A stretch of DNA of 63,671 nucleotides, counting the filler, from Octopus bimaculoides (lineage: Eukaryota), in assembly GCF_001194135.2 (NCBI RefSeq). It is 9 parts of 6 records of this genome, joined end to end, with 100 filler letters (N's around TTAATTAATTAA, not from the genome) between each part and the next. Parts side by side here need not be neighbours in the genome. Positions count along the whole stretch, not along the records: positions 30,595 to 37,618 come from NC_068983.1; 8 more parts are not named here. The stretch is one strand, 5' to 3'. Both the position numbers and the translations under genes were made by a program. The notes beneath the pieces were generated by a model. That model was not told where the DNA came from and searched no databases. It saw nothing but the letters and a program-made list of their open reading frames with translations. How positions within the stretch are numbered: position 1 is the stretch's first letter; each line of letters begins with the position of its first letter. Shown one piece after another: positions 31,535 to 36,438 of this stretch.

Positions 31535-31623
31535 TATATAACAGTGTTGTGCAATATCAACGGAGTTTGTATCTCGTAGTTCCGATGATCGAAACAAGAT
31601 TCTCAGTTTACTGTAAATCGTAG
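31535..31623 (+). promoter_or_regulatory. putative TATA box (TATATAA 31535-31541) and short non-coding first exon of the peptide gene
   Basis: The TATA lies about 30-40 nt before a TCGTAGTT initiator-like site, and there is a donor TAG|GTAATC at 31623/31624. Confidence 0.4.
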
Positions 31624-31709
31624 GTAATCTATTCAATATAAATCGAAATTACATGCCTATTTTCTAATATTCAAAATTCAAATCTATCTGATCGGGTATT
31701 TACGTCTGA

Positions 31710-31776
<67 letters not shown>

Positions 31777-31874
31777 TCAAACATACATAACTATGTGCCT
31801 ATATATTTCCATATATGTTAATTTTTTTTGGCATATATGTATATATACATACATATAAATTTTATAGATTCAAC

Positions 31875-31935
31875 ATGAATTCTACAGTCTTTCTCATCAT
31901 CTTCGGAATATTCATGATGTTTGCTTTGACAATAG
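31875..31935 (+). CDS. signal-peptide exon of a small secreted Cys-rich peptide (exon 31868-31935)
   Basis: Acceptor ttttatag|; ATG at 31875; MNSTVFLIIFGIFMMFALTI+G; donor ATAG|GTAAGA in phase 1. Confidence 0.72.
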
Positions 31936-33913
31936 GTAAGAAAAATATCCTCTCATCTGTTAAACGATTTTTCGACCCTGATCTAATGCCACTTATTGTG
32001 ATTAATTGTACACCCACATCTAATTTTGTGCAGAATTTTTATTATTTTCTGGGAGAAGTTCTTCAGAAAATTACTGCCCATTATATCCCTGTATCTGTAA
32101 TCATACTTTATGCAAGAGTATTCTGCTGGCAGATTCCCTATACAGGACTTGCCTTTTATAGATAGAAATCTCTTATTATTTTCCTTAACTAGTCTCTTCA
32201 GTCCAATCTGTTCTCTTCATTATTCTTGTTTCCTATTAATATCTTCTTCAACACCCAAAATCTCAATATTTACTTGGAAAACCTTTATCTCATCAATAAT
32301 ATCTTAAATTTATTTGGCTCCAATTCCACTAAATTGATCAGCCATATCCTTTCATTGTCCAAAATCACGCAATTACCGACTGACCCTTTAGCAGGTACTT
32401 AGATTTTCAAAAGTGTTACTTATTTCACAACTAAGAAAACATAATACGTAGAACAAATCATAACATTCTGAAGCATATGGACTCGCAATTTAATGCACAC
32501 CCACATTCACATTCACAGACACACAGACAGACAAACACACACGCTTACTCACTCATATACTAACCAATAACTCGTTCTCTATTTCATTTTAAACCAAGAC
32601 ATGCCTCATTCGATTAATTTCCAAAAATCAATACTGGCTGTGGTACCCATTTCATGATTTTCAAATTCTGCCGTTCATTGTTACATTGAACTTCACTTAT
32701 ATTCTCTTTATTGGATTCTGTACCAGACAATCGATTATTACTGATCAATCTCTCATCAATCATCTCAGGATAACGTGTTTGATGGGAAACAACGTAAATC
32801 TCAGTTTCTTACAAATTCTCGAGCACTTCCTGTTTATCTGAGAATATTTACATAGAGATAATCAAAGCAAACTTACGTTACAAAACCCAAACCCATAAGA
32901 GGAACAGATTTTCTCTCATACATCATTGCCACCATATCTATCCAATATCAGAAACGATATAACGCACTTTATAACAATGCTTATTTATTTCCATCAGTAG
33001 AAACCTCCATTACATTCTCCTATTTTTCATGCATTACTGGGTGCCACACGTTTGTGATGTTTGCTGAAAGCAATTATTTTCTTCAGATATCATCCAAATT
33101 TATTTCATCACTATTATATCTCGACCACAGCTTCAGTTCTTGGATTAAAGTGTTTGTGCAAAATTTCCTTCTTAGATCTGCTACCTCTAGAATAGACTCT
33201 CCTTTTAAGTCTTCCCAGAAACATCTAACTTTGGAATGTTCTCACTGAAATCTCGAACCTGCAGAGTTGTTCATTATTAAGGACGTTTCTTGTATTTTAT
33301 GATTAAACAAACCTTTTTCTAAAAGCAAGAACAAACCTTCAATTGACTTTTCTAATATATTGATCACTGTCTAACAAAAGATTGACGTCTGTCGTTAAGA
33401 TAGTCACGGCTCAGTAAATCATTTGCCTAACAGTAAATGTCTCTCAGTTGTTCTTTTATTCTTTTATTCATTAACTTGTTTCAGTCATTTGACTGCGGTC
33501 ATACAGGAACACCCAAATTTGATGACTATATTACAGTAGCATATCGTTGTTCATCATAGAATTGATCGAAATTGTAAGAGAAATTTGAACAATTAAATCA
33601 TTAAACTTAGACTAACTTATTCTGTGTCATCGTCAGTAGCAATAACATAAAGTTGAAGCTAGAAATAGGTATGACTAATGGATGAGGGATATAGTATATA
33701 TTTAGAAAATTTAAGCGAGAGACATGCGTTGACAGCAAAGGTAGGGCACATTGAAAGTTGACCGGTGTAGTAGAAACAGTTTAAAACAGGTTCAAAGAAA
33801 GAGATGAAGCGAATGAAAATAGTAGCTTTGATATCAATACGATGTACCTTTGTCTTGAATTTCTAATATAATACAATGATATTAAGACAACTTTTATTAT
33901 TTTCTAATTTTAG

Positions 33914-34035
33914 GCATTGAAAATAAATGTCGAAGAAGATGCATGAGAGAAAATCTGGGAACTGGAAATTCGAAAGGGCGCCTCGCTTATTTGCAATGTT
34001 ATTTTGATAATTGTTCAACATACAAAGTTCACTGA
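33914..34035 (+). CDS. mature-peptide (last) exon: (G)IENKCRRRCMRENLGTGNSKGRLAYLQCYFDNCSTYKVH*
   Basis: Strong acceptor cttttattattttctaattttag|; in frame with the phase-1 donor at 31935; four Cys in C-X3-C-X18-C-X4-C; AATAAA at 34301-34306. Confidence 0.68.
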
Positions 34036-34107
34036 AGAAAATCAATAACCAATATGCGATATTATAATCAATAATTTTAAAGACAACATTTATATAGAGA
34101 ACAGAGA

Positions 34108-34179
34108 AAAGCGAAGAAATTATCTCTCGTAAAAACGAAGAAATTATCTCTCGTAAAAGCGAAGAAATTATCTCTCGTA
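34108..34179. repeat. 3 x 24-bp minisatellite (aaa(g/a)cgaagaaattatctctcgta)
   Basis: Three near-identical adjacent units read directly. Confidence 0.95.
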
Positions 34180-36438
34180 TATGAGATGGGTTTCTATATA
34201 AAATTCTGTATAAAATTCATGGTTGTCATATTAAAATATACCTCGTAATATGAAATAATTGTTGGTTTATAATTGTTTGATGGCGTTATTTGATTTACAT
34301 AATAAAGGAAAGATTTCTATGTTGAACAGTTGTTGATTACTGAAGATGTTTAACTGTGTAACTGATATATCAAGCAGTCTTTTTGTTAAATTAATCATAC
34401 GCCGGGATGGAAATCGTGTTCTACATAATTAATTCTACACAGTATAGTCATGGGAAAAATACCTGAAAATTTTATTGTGTTTTGGATTTCTTACACATCT
34501 TCTGTAATGGGAAGTTCAATCTGGTGATGTCCACATTATTTGCCTAATGTACGTGGTTCATCTAGTACCAAGTTATTAAAATGAAAACACCACTATTGAA
34601 GAATAAATCAATTCAGAACAAAGATAAAAAAAGGAAAAGACAACCAATGCAACAATTTGTACAGAGCTTGAATGGCTTCCATATGCCATTACGAACCATA
34701 GAGTGACTGGTCTAACAGTTACTGTCGATTCAAAATGAGTAGGGAAGTATATAAGATTTCTGTGATTACTCATAGTGCAGTGTTATAATTTTAAAGATTG
34801 ACTCAAGAAAAATTATAAACTAATGATTTGGTCCATTGAAGGTCTACCTTTGCGCATGTCCTGCACATGTGAACCTTTTTCAATACTCTTTGTTCCCACC
34901 GGAATTGCCCGTTCCTAACCTAACTTATCATTGTTAACCAGATTATTGGAATTTCAGTTGAAGTGACTAGACCTTGGATGCATACTGAAGTGGTTTACTG
35001 GTCTGGTACTTTCTCCAGTCAGGTGGGATCTGAACTCAGGTCGTAAAAAATCGAAACATATACCGTAAAGCATTTCTGCCGAGGCAGCAGCGATTCTGTC
35101 ACTCTCCCTCCACCTGCAGAGCAACATTGAATAAAGTATTTTGCTCTAGAGTACAACGCGTCGCCCAGGCTGGGTATAGAAACAACGATCTAACGCTCGC
35201 ACGTGTAAAACGCTAATCAGTAGGGTACGTACCTTTAGGCACTAGGGATACCTGCTGTATAACAACCTATCAGAATGGCCTGAGTAGCAGTTAAAATACC
35301 AGACTAAAATCGTTTTAAACTCATCTTTGATCCATATAGTATATAAAATAGCTGAAAAAATATTAATTGAAATAGCAGTTATACAACAGTTAAAATAACA
35401 GACTACAGGCATTTAGGATATATTTGACTCTTACAACAACTAATATAGCAACTCAAATAGAAGTAATATAGCAATTAAAATCAAGGTTAACAAAATAGGG
35501 AATTAAATACATTAAAAGAAAGTTGAATTCGTCTGTAAGTAAAAAATATTTAAATGAAACCATAAGTACATATTGTATATATTTAATGTGATACATAAAT
35601 ACATAGAAATACACACGCCCGCCCGTGCATACGCACTCACACATAAATGTAGTAAAATCGATAAAAAGGTTACAGAGAACTTCCATTGAAGTATCGGACA
35701 CCCAGCATTTGGGACAGTGTTTGCTTTGGATTGATCAATAACAATTTGCAATGTTAAAACACTCCACCACGAACATATCTAGTGAGAAGCAGTAATGCGC
35801 TACTTGTCAGGCCTGAGAAAACGGAGAAAACGTACTTCACTAACAGAGGAAATAAATCTTATATATTGGTGTCTGAATTAGGCAAAAGAGCAGGAAGTTT
35901 GAGGGCGAGTATAACTCGATACTAGCAGTGAGTGAGACTGAAATGGGACCCATCACAGAGCCAACAAAAAATACCTATTTTCGCATTTCCATTAAATATT
36001 TCATAGTGATTTTACGGTCATTGAATAAACAAATCTGTTGCCAATAATAGCAAAGCTTTATTTCAAAGAATACAATGAAGTGTAACTCACGATAGACAAG
36101 TGGTTCCAGATCGAAGATTGACATATTTCTACGCGTGAGGGAGATTGTAAACCAGACCCCCACAGCAGAATCTTCAATCACACGAGTAATGTTTTCACAT
36201 TTGGTCACAATTTTACATGTGAATTAACAAATTCTGTTCCACCTAAACCCAACCGCATACCATATTTCTTCTCTGTGTCTGGTTTCTCGTAATTTTAATT
36301 TCCGAACTCACTTCTCCCAGCGTTTTCCCTTGAATTCCCTAAATTATATTATTATTATTATTATTATTATTATCATTATTATCATTATTATTATTATTAA
36401 TAATAATAATAATAATAATAATAACAATAATATTTTAA

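Follow-up and report, generated by a model that had tools for sequence, protein, structure and literature searches.

Gene structure and major transcript

The locus LOC128247259 of Octopus bimaculoides raises the question of which protein is actually made from it. NCBI assigns to it an 'uncharacterized protein' of 105 amino acids (aa; XP_052821961.1, encoded on chromosome CM046603.1 at 8.04-8.07 Mb), whereas a first-pass annotation of the same DNA had proposed a hidden spliced gene for a small secreted peptide. The gene lies within positions 30595-37618 (NC_068983.1) of the window, i.e. the whole stretch of 63,671 nucleotides (nt) that was analysed, and coordinates in the wider locus, L001, correspond to window coordinates minus 14664. 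The term 'hidden' proved to be only partly appropriate, since the locus was already annotated and the signal exon is contained in a 116-aa read-through open reading frame (ORF, 31815-32165), but the NCBI coding sequence is indeed a different one and lacks a signal peptide.

Our data describe a real, spliced, tandemly duplicated and Octopus-restricted gene, the major mRNA of which encodes a 60-aa precursor. The explanation that we favour, and to which we assign a probability of roughly 0.7, is that this three-exon gene gives rise, by way of the 60-aa precursor, to a secreted, disulfide-stapled hairpin effector of 39 residues and a charge of +5 belonging to a diversifying tandem family, and that the NCBI product is probably not functional.

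Translation of positions 31875-31935 joined to 33914-34035 yielded the 60-aa ORF MNSTVFLIIFGIFMMFALTIG followed by IENKCRRRCMRENLGTGNSKGRLAYLQCYFDNCSTYKVH and a stop codon, with GT-AG splice sites and a phase-1 junction as the first-pass annotation had predicted. All parts of the gene are on the plus strand. Exon 1 (30803-31507), a non-coding transcribed 5' region, corresponds to an unbroken 705-nt contig of the RNA run X1 (depth 178) that ends exactly at the donor GTGTG/GTAAGT at 31507/31508, so that its 3' end is exact. Intron 1 (31508-31867, 360 nt) is followed by the 68-nt exon 2 (31868-31935), which consists of 7 nt of 5' untranslated region (UTR), the ATG at 31875 (context ATTCAACATGA, with A at -3), the signal peptide MNSTVFLIIFGIFMMFALTI and the first base of the codon of G21, which is thus split in phase 1. 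Intron 2 (31936-33913, 1978 nt), which harbours a fragment of a short interspersed nuclear element (SINE) at about 33451-33513, starts with the donor ATAG/GTAAGA and ends in a T-rich tract with the acceptor ttttag/G. The coding part of exon 3 (33914-34035) comprises the end of G21, the 39-aa mature peptide IENKCRRRCMRENLGTGNSKGRLAYLQCYFDNCSTYKVH (33916-34032) with its Cys codons at 33928, 33940, 33997 and 34012, and the TGA at 34033-34035; it is identical in XP_052821961.1.

According to the run index, the stretch is contained in X1 and in many genomic runs of organism A, X1 (typed 'RNA?' in the index) being the single RNA-type public run that contains the exons. A 125-nt contig of X1 (depth 1245) covers all of exon 2 and joins it to 31507 upstream, skipping 360 nt, and to 33914 downstream, both joints being of the GT..AG type. 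The junction 31935/33914 was thereby found in RNA, and the extra internal exon that had been considered is ruled out for the major form. Intron coverage in X1 was ~9x, as expected of pre-mRNA, whereas the genomic run X2 showed a flat coverage of ~13x and zero joints; X1 therefore truly contains complementary DNA. As the junction contigs sum to a depth of ~1790, far above the mean of 178 for the exon 1 contig, most transcripts probably start ~100 nt upstream of 31507. The upstream TATA/UTR exon that had been proposed at 31535-~31622 showed zero RNA depth and has to be replaced by the 5' exon ending at 31507.

At the other end of the gene, the X1 exon-3 contig (33913-34016, depth 1491) dead-ends 17 nt before the stop codon and is continued by no X1 contig. 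Possible causes are clipping of a short 3' end by the assembler, a sequence variant and a genuine difference at the 3' end. Positions 34017-34035, which comprise the final six codons and the stop codon, are outside X1 coverage but are identical in the NCBI model and unchanged in a sister species. An AATAAA at 34301-34306, noted downstream in the first-pass annotation, is present as a motif, but X1 depth is zero from 34017 to 34354 while the intron is covered ~9x, and the motif is therefore unsupported as the poly(A) signal. The proximal motifs AATAAC (34044-34049) and AATAAT (34070-34075) are candidate signals: the 3'UTR is 77% conserved with that of a tandem paralogue, which carries CTCAATAAAG there, and from the alignment of the paralogue's canonical AATAAA with AATAAC at 34044-49 we infer a poly(A) site near 34060-34100.

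Restricted expression and lack of relatives in databases

Among the indexed public runs, exons 2 and 3 were seen as RNA in X1 only. Exon depth was zero in the directly mapped RNA runs X5, X6 and X7 (deep raw RNA-seq, about 6% sampled) as well as in X8, X9, X12, X15 and X18, and the exons stood at 0.00 in the run index for X10 and X11; these negatives represent ten RNA runs from six studies other than that of X1. Two other species belonging to the study of X1 gave runs without even the octopus SINE, which are therefore from distant taxa and uninformative on this gene. Among the runs examined, the gene was thus seen at very high abundance in a single sample and in none of the others, i.e. its expression is extremely restricted. 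Such a very high expression in one sample points to a specialised secretory tissue with uncharacterised products.

A search of 5.8e9 clustered proteins returned XP_052821961.1 as the only match, with 100% identity over the exon-3 part. Exhaustive HMMER searching of 1.84e9 representative proteins returned only NCBI's model and P0002, a protein of 1087 aa (E 1e-24) made up of 19 perfect copies of a 57-aa unit and encoded on an ENA metagenome contig (37 kb). P0002 was rejected as a homologue because each of its repeats matches weakly (ALSTGVNSQCTPRCQNDTLETS) and its score is the sum of identical chance matches, a case which illustrates how repeat proteins inflate whole-sequence HMMER E-values. 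No Pfam family was found for the peptide, nor for the N-terminal 65 aa of the NCBI model; near-noise matches to Gamma-thionin (E 0.05, P0001), PIN-TPR-GreABC (E 0.02, paralogue) and OTOS were far below gathering scores and were discarded. Comparison with all PDB chains by phmmer gave 0 matches at E<=10, and a Foldseek search of the PDB likewise gave 0 matches, although this method is weak for hairpins of 39 residues. The Rfam scan of window positions 30595-37618 detected no family. The suggestion that the peptide belongs to an unrecognised family thus stands, no credible relative having been found in Pfam, among the PDB sequences, with Foldseek or in either protein collection. Literature on the locus, on its accession and on Cys-rich peptides secreted by octopus was also searched, which yielded nothing relevant, and no paper mentioned LOC128247259.

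Properties and predicted fold of the peptide

The mature part contains 8 Lys/Arg versus 3 Asp/Glu, in agreement with the first-pass count, and has a net charge of +4.8 at pH 7, an isoelectric point of 9.4 and a computed monoisotopic mass of 4622.17 Da with two disulfides. Its Cys spacing is C-X3-C-X18-C-X4-C, so that only the first of the two pairs that had been described as CX3C is of this type (CRRRC), the second being CX4C (CYFDNC). The putative leader FLIIFGIFMMFALTI has a 17-residue hydrophobic stretch, for which the Kyte-Doolittle mean over 15 residues reaches a maximum of 2.75; small residues occupy positions -3/-1 at the exon boundary both here (T-I-G) and in the paralogue (T-E-G). The hydrophobic leader with T and G at these positions was thus recovered as proposed, and the T-x-G is conserved; cleavage itself is inferred.

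AlphaFold2, run with the single sequence of the 39-aa mature peptide, returned a model with a mean predicted local distance difference test score (pLDDT) of 79, in which helix 2-13 and helix 19-33 are separated by a loop, helix 1 bearing C5 and C9 and helix 2 bearing C28 and C33. The idea of a helical hairpin, for which a structure prediction had been suggested as a check, is consistent with this helix-loop-helix model. Helix 1 is rich in arginine (K4, R6-8, R11) and helix 2 carries L23, Y25, L26, Y29 and F30, an arrangement that in the model fits membrane or receptor binding.

On this basis we propose that the hydrophobic leader would direct the precursor to the endoplasmic reticulum and be cut off after T-I-G21, and that the 39-aa product would fold as an antiparallel helix-loop-helix stapled by C5-C33 and C9-C28. 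The peptide would then be released in large amounts from a single specialised tissue, or in a single state, and act outside the cell, its target being bound by way of the arginine-rich helix 1 and the aromatic/hydrophobic helix 2. As to its role, our best guess places a host-defence, membrane-active effector slightly above a channel-blocking toxin or a reproductive/chemical signal, which the data do not separate.

A tandem family with one- and two-module members

Upstream of the gene, a tandem paralogue was identified at L001 1467-7130 (window-equivalent 16131-21794), likewise consisting of three exons with a phase-1 junction. Its exon-1-like stretch (L001 1467-1773) is followed by a signal exon (L001 4788-4848) that encodes MNSAFFLIILAIYMMISVTE plus the G, with the donor G/GTAGGA, and by exon 3 (from L001 6591; 6591-6763), which lies behind the same ttttag/GC acceptor and gives FKVDCQPECEAKRKNSTINSWLECLREHCKCRYDCYNSFLKHEKFNAYMKCLSGCP and a stop. 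The ATG, the phase-1 G/GT donor and the acceptor are thus all kept. The resulting precursor of 77 aa, which reads MNSAFFLIILAIYMMISVTEG followed at the exon junction by FKVDCQPEC...CLREHCKCRYDC...AYMKCLSGCP and a stop codon, contains eight Cys in two hairpin modules. No candidate was found for this precursor in the database of 5.8e9 proteins, and the paralogue is therefore apparently unannotated.

Nucleotide identity between the two copies was 72% for the end of intron 1, 78% for exon 2 (with the same ATG and phase), 74% for the start of intron 2, 80% for its end and 77% for the 3'UTR. The mature region aligns globally with the second Cys module of the paralogue (74% over 81 columns, with many indels), KCRRRC corresponding to KCRYDC and AYLQC to AYMKC, with a 3-residue indel in the loop and CX4C here versus CX3C in the paralogue. 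The latter has an additional N-terminal module, CQPEC...CLREHC, so that its modules are one CX3C...CX4C and one CX3C...CX3C. Nei-Gojobori estimates of dN/dS (non-synonymous over synonymous divergence) between the paralogues were 0.23/0.28 for the signal peptide and 0.79/0.40 for the aligned mature blocks, which suggests that the mature part evolves in a diversifying or relaxed manner.

A copy of the upstream exon of the NCBI model was detected at L001 25630-25957, 6.4 kb downstream of the gene (72% identity in nt, 54% in aa, frame open). The array therefore extends beyond these two genes, its unit recurring about every 15 kb, and downstream there is probably a third member of the family. In addition, X2 and a second species yielded genomic contigs in which the intron end and the 3'UTR are shared and the sequence between them differs; one of these contigs reads ...KNSQCRLGC, again opening with CX3C. 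With the Octopus tandem family the present gene has in common the exon layout, signal exon, phase-1 donor, intron end, 3'UTR and Cys register. Such a family would diversify as whole genes are duplicated in tandem, loops gain or lose residues, the Cys module is doubled and amino-acid-changing substitutions accumulate in excess in the mature part.

For a second organism, D, which carries a different species label, genomic contigs about 94-95% identical at the locus were available. Its exon 3 has no indel, the AG, the four Cys codons and the TGA being unchanged, and shows five substitutions, of which two are synonymous (R28, R32) and three lead to R29K, T37N and L44I; the only change listed for exon 2 is synonymous (A17). 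Loss of the frame or of the Cys residues in orthologues had been named beforehand as an outcome that would speak against the gene, and both are preserved in organism D.

Arguments for and against a selected function

Several points weigh against the explanation given above. The gene is known at the level of DNA and RNA, and its expression rests on the single run X1, typed 'RNA?'; coverage of exon 3 in this run ends at 34016, short of the stop codon, of the six codons in front of it and of the 3' end, so that a different 3' structure is possible. The n-region of the leader (MNS) is without a basic residue, and the disulfide pattern and the fold depend on one single-sequence prediction. The dN/dS values between the paralogues are based on about 10 synonymous sites and a Cys-anchored alignment, and the orthologue changes (3 non-synonymous to 2 synonymous) are too few to show constraint. 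Finally, no homologue was found outside Octopus by any search, and a young gene with little function is possible.

Carried to its end, the last argument would make of LOC128247259 a young lineage-restricted transcript, untranslated or without selected function, and of the 'family' a recent segmental duplication. The restriction to Octopus, the expression in a single run and an orthologue comparison indistinguishable from neutrality are all as this explanation would have them, and the exon-1 donor is derived from a SINE fragment. It has difficulty, however, in accounting for paralogues that differ at ~22-26% of the aligned nt and nevertheless keep the ATG, the leader, T-x-G and the phase-1 junction, together with open frames of 60 and 77 codons, Cys pairs in register and one in-frame module duplication. 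Further paralogous contigs open with xxxxCX3C, and the depth in the expressing sample is above 1000. We therefore consider a transcript of this kind unlikely, and prefer a gene for a secreted hairpin peptide.

The coding sequence annotated by NCBI

The NCBI coding sequence runs from an upstream exon at L001 10001-10138, 6.6 kb upstream, by way of a 60-nt exon (exon 1b, 31448-31507) into exon 3, the reading frame being continuous from exon 1b into exon 3. Exon 2 is left out, and 65 residues without a signal peptide are placed at the N-terminus, so that only the C-terminal 40 residues of XP_052821961.1, encoded by the same exon 3, are shared with the 60-aa precursor (100% identity). Were this model right, the signal-less 105-aa protein would be the product and exon 2 an alternative or aberrant cassette. 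The joint on which it depends does occur in X1: a second contig (depth 541) connects 31507 directly to 33914 (GT..AG) and represents an exon-2-skipped isoform, which accounts for ~30% of the junction depth. The open frame from exon 1b into exon 3, as well as that of the upstream-exon copy 6.4 kb downstream of the gene, may also be cited in favour of the model.

Against it, transcripts with exon 2 outnumber those without it 2.3-fold in X1, and the X1 contig runs unbroken through 31448, where the NCBI acceptor is not visibly used. With the exon 1 actually present in X1, the exon-3 frame of the skipped isoform is closed by a TAA at 31444-46 and no ATG follows this TAA; the skipped isoform is therefore unproductive, having no start codon for the exon-3 frame, whereas no other ORF of the full isoform is as long as the 60-aa one. 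Exon 2, moreover, is conserved in the paralogue with respect to its ATG, phase and hydrophobic leader, whereas the identities of the upstream-exon copy (54% aa, 72% nt) are about those expected under neutral drift and the N-terminal 65 aa match no family. A Cys-stapled hairpin would also make more sense in the secretory pathway. Because of the unbroken contig, the closed frame of the skipped form and the longest ORF of the full form, the NCBI coding sequence for LOC128247259 is regarded as probably wrong; the 105-aa protein, modelled on the less abundant isoform without exon 2, is unlikely to be the functional product, and we hold the opposite view to be quite improbable. In cephalopod genomes, small spliced genes that encode secreted peptides are missed or modelled wrongly in a systematic way; here the NCBI pipeline chose the minor isoform.

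Intron 2 contains at 32905-32946 a 42-nt stretch that partially repeats, in inverted orientation, the start of exon 3 (33916-33957, the ...CMRENL part), to which it is 74% complementary, with matches at 16 positions in the last 17 nt. It could pair with exon 3 in the pre-mRNA, which might bear on exon skipping or adenosine-to-inosine editing, or may be due to chance.

Processing of the precursor

Small precursors with a signal peptide are also what a neuropeptide or hormone gene would provide, and the present one has two basic clusters, R27-R29 (RRR) and K41-G42-R43, at which it could be cut into short linear peptides. RRR, however, is located between the two Cys of predicted helix 1, and the K-G-R is single; repeated copies, classical dibasic flanks and a G-K/R-R amidation site are lacking, and the paralogue conserves the Cys framework but not the basic sites. 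Together with the finding that no indexed public run except X1 contains the exons, this led us to reject the neuropeptide/prohormone class as very improbable.

An uncleaved signal anchor, which would make the product a micropeptide that spans the membrane once and exposes its Cys-stapled domain of 39 aa to the lumen or to the cell exterior, is suggested by the 17-residue hydrophobic stretch and the uncharged n-region, but deserves very little credence, 17 residues being short for an anchor, the small residues at -3/-1 of the exon boundary being conserved in both paralogues, and the layout of signal exon, phase-1 intron and mature exon, which is typical of cleaved secretory peptide genes, fitting a secreted peptide.

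Relation to known helical hairpin peptides

Alpha-hairpinins are defined by the motif XnC1X3C2XnC3X3C4Xn, a helix-loop-helix fold and the disulfides C1-C4 and C2-C3 (PMC7191063); members such as the plant defence peptides EcAMP1, MiAMP2c, BWI-2 and Luffin P1 are short, secreted and often cationic, with two Cys pairs on antiparallel helices (PMC7191063). The fold predicted for the octopus peptide is the same, with one Cys pair on each of two antiparallel helices connected by a loop, and the second module of the paralogue has the exact CX3C...CX3C spacing. This member, in contrast, departs from the strict motif by the CX4C of its second pair and has an 18-residue loop, so that, judged by the Cys spacing, the Octopus family straddles the motif. 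There is no sequence similarity, and the gene of the octopus peptide is that of an animal and has a separate exon for the signal. Plant alpha-hairpinins are usually cut from vicilin-like or multi-module precursors. On comparison of the sequences we regard the octopus peptides as an independent family of the same structural kind as the alpha-hairpinins and not as members of them.

Helical hairpins with two disulfides (C1-C4/C2-C3) are known as well from the scorpion kappa-hefutoxins and OmTx and from the Conus framework-XIV peptides flf14a-c and vil14a (PMC7191063). As in these Cys-stabilised alpha/alpha toxins, some of which are molluscan, basic and aromatic residues that could form a K/Y dyad (PMC7191063) are present, and the mature region is fast-evolving, as is generally known of toxin genes. 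The octopus peptide differs from these scorpion and Conus toxins (22-27 residues, CX3C twice) in having 39 residues with CX3C plus CX4C and no sequence similarity, and its exons were seen in one public RNA run only. Aplysia attractin, a water-borne pheromone of about 58 aa, is a further secreted, disulfide-stapled helical hairpin that is rapidly evolving and made in large amounts in one reproductive gland. It has six Cys forming three disulfides and a conserved IEECKTS motif, as opposed to four Cys here, and the PDB-wide sequence search was empty even at E<=10. The mitochondrial small Tims with their twin CX3C were also considered and excluded on account of the hydrophobic leader on an exon of its own, the missing match to Pfam zf-Tim10_DDP and the CX4C of the second pair.

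More tentatively, and with less confidence than would make it a conclusion, the gene may be taken to represent an undescribed octopod-restricted family of secreted hairpin peptides in tandem arrays, positively selected and acting as specialised effectors of a tissue or stage sampled once, i.e. an independent molluscan invention of the alpha-hairpinin/kappa-hefutoxin scaffold that annotation has missed or mis-modelled. Should the peptide be made as proposed, this would be a new lineage-specific octopus family of disulfide-stapled helical hairpins, in convergent evolution with the scaffold of plant antimicrobial and protease-inhibitor peptides and of the K+ channel blockers of scorpions and cone snails, and peptide engineering would gain a compact scaffold of 39 residues. 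The tandem array with its one-module and two-module members provides a system in which the diversification of an effector family can be followed.

Repeats and other features of the locus

The donor of exon 1 is located in 32 nt derived from the head of a very high-copy octopus SINE (31487-31518, plus strand), a piece that was present at a depth of tens of thousands in every octopus run and the loose ends of which continue with the consensus CTTACCAACCACATGG; since the donor is inside it, this piece of the repeat has been exonised. The same 32 nt recur as the reverse complement at 36748-36779, within a fuller SINE copy that is inverted at about 36433-36779 (minus strand), and fragments of the SINE tail were found at 30603-30671 and 33471-33504 (within 30595-30700 and 33451-33513, respectively). 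TRF detected a microsatellite, (TATC)17, in intron 1 (31710-31776) and, in the 3' flank (34107-34179, plus strand), three tandem copies of the 24-nt unit AAAAGCGAAGAAATTATCTCTCGT, of which the aligned paralogue stretch examined has one recognisable copy.

Further downstream, a degenerate ORF with stops and frameshifts (36990-37400, plus strand), which reads …IPSELVKNGGSKLIKALIVICQKIGETKNWQKE…CQNYRT…EEVGFKPQMSN…FIDFKKAL, gave no match in Pfam; it may resemble the N-terminal part of the reverse transcriptases of long interspersed nuclear elements. Two further microsatellites are an ACA-rich triplet array with CAA/CAG/CCA runs (36881-36950), located inside a mechanical ORF of 177 aa, and an ATT/TAA array at 36343-36432, which forms a near-perfect palindrome.

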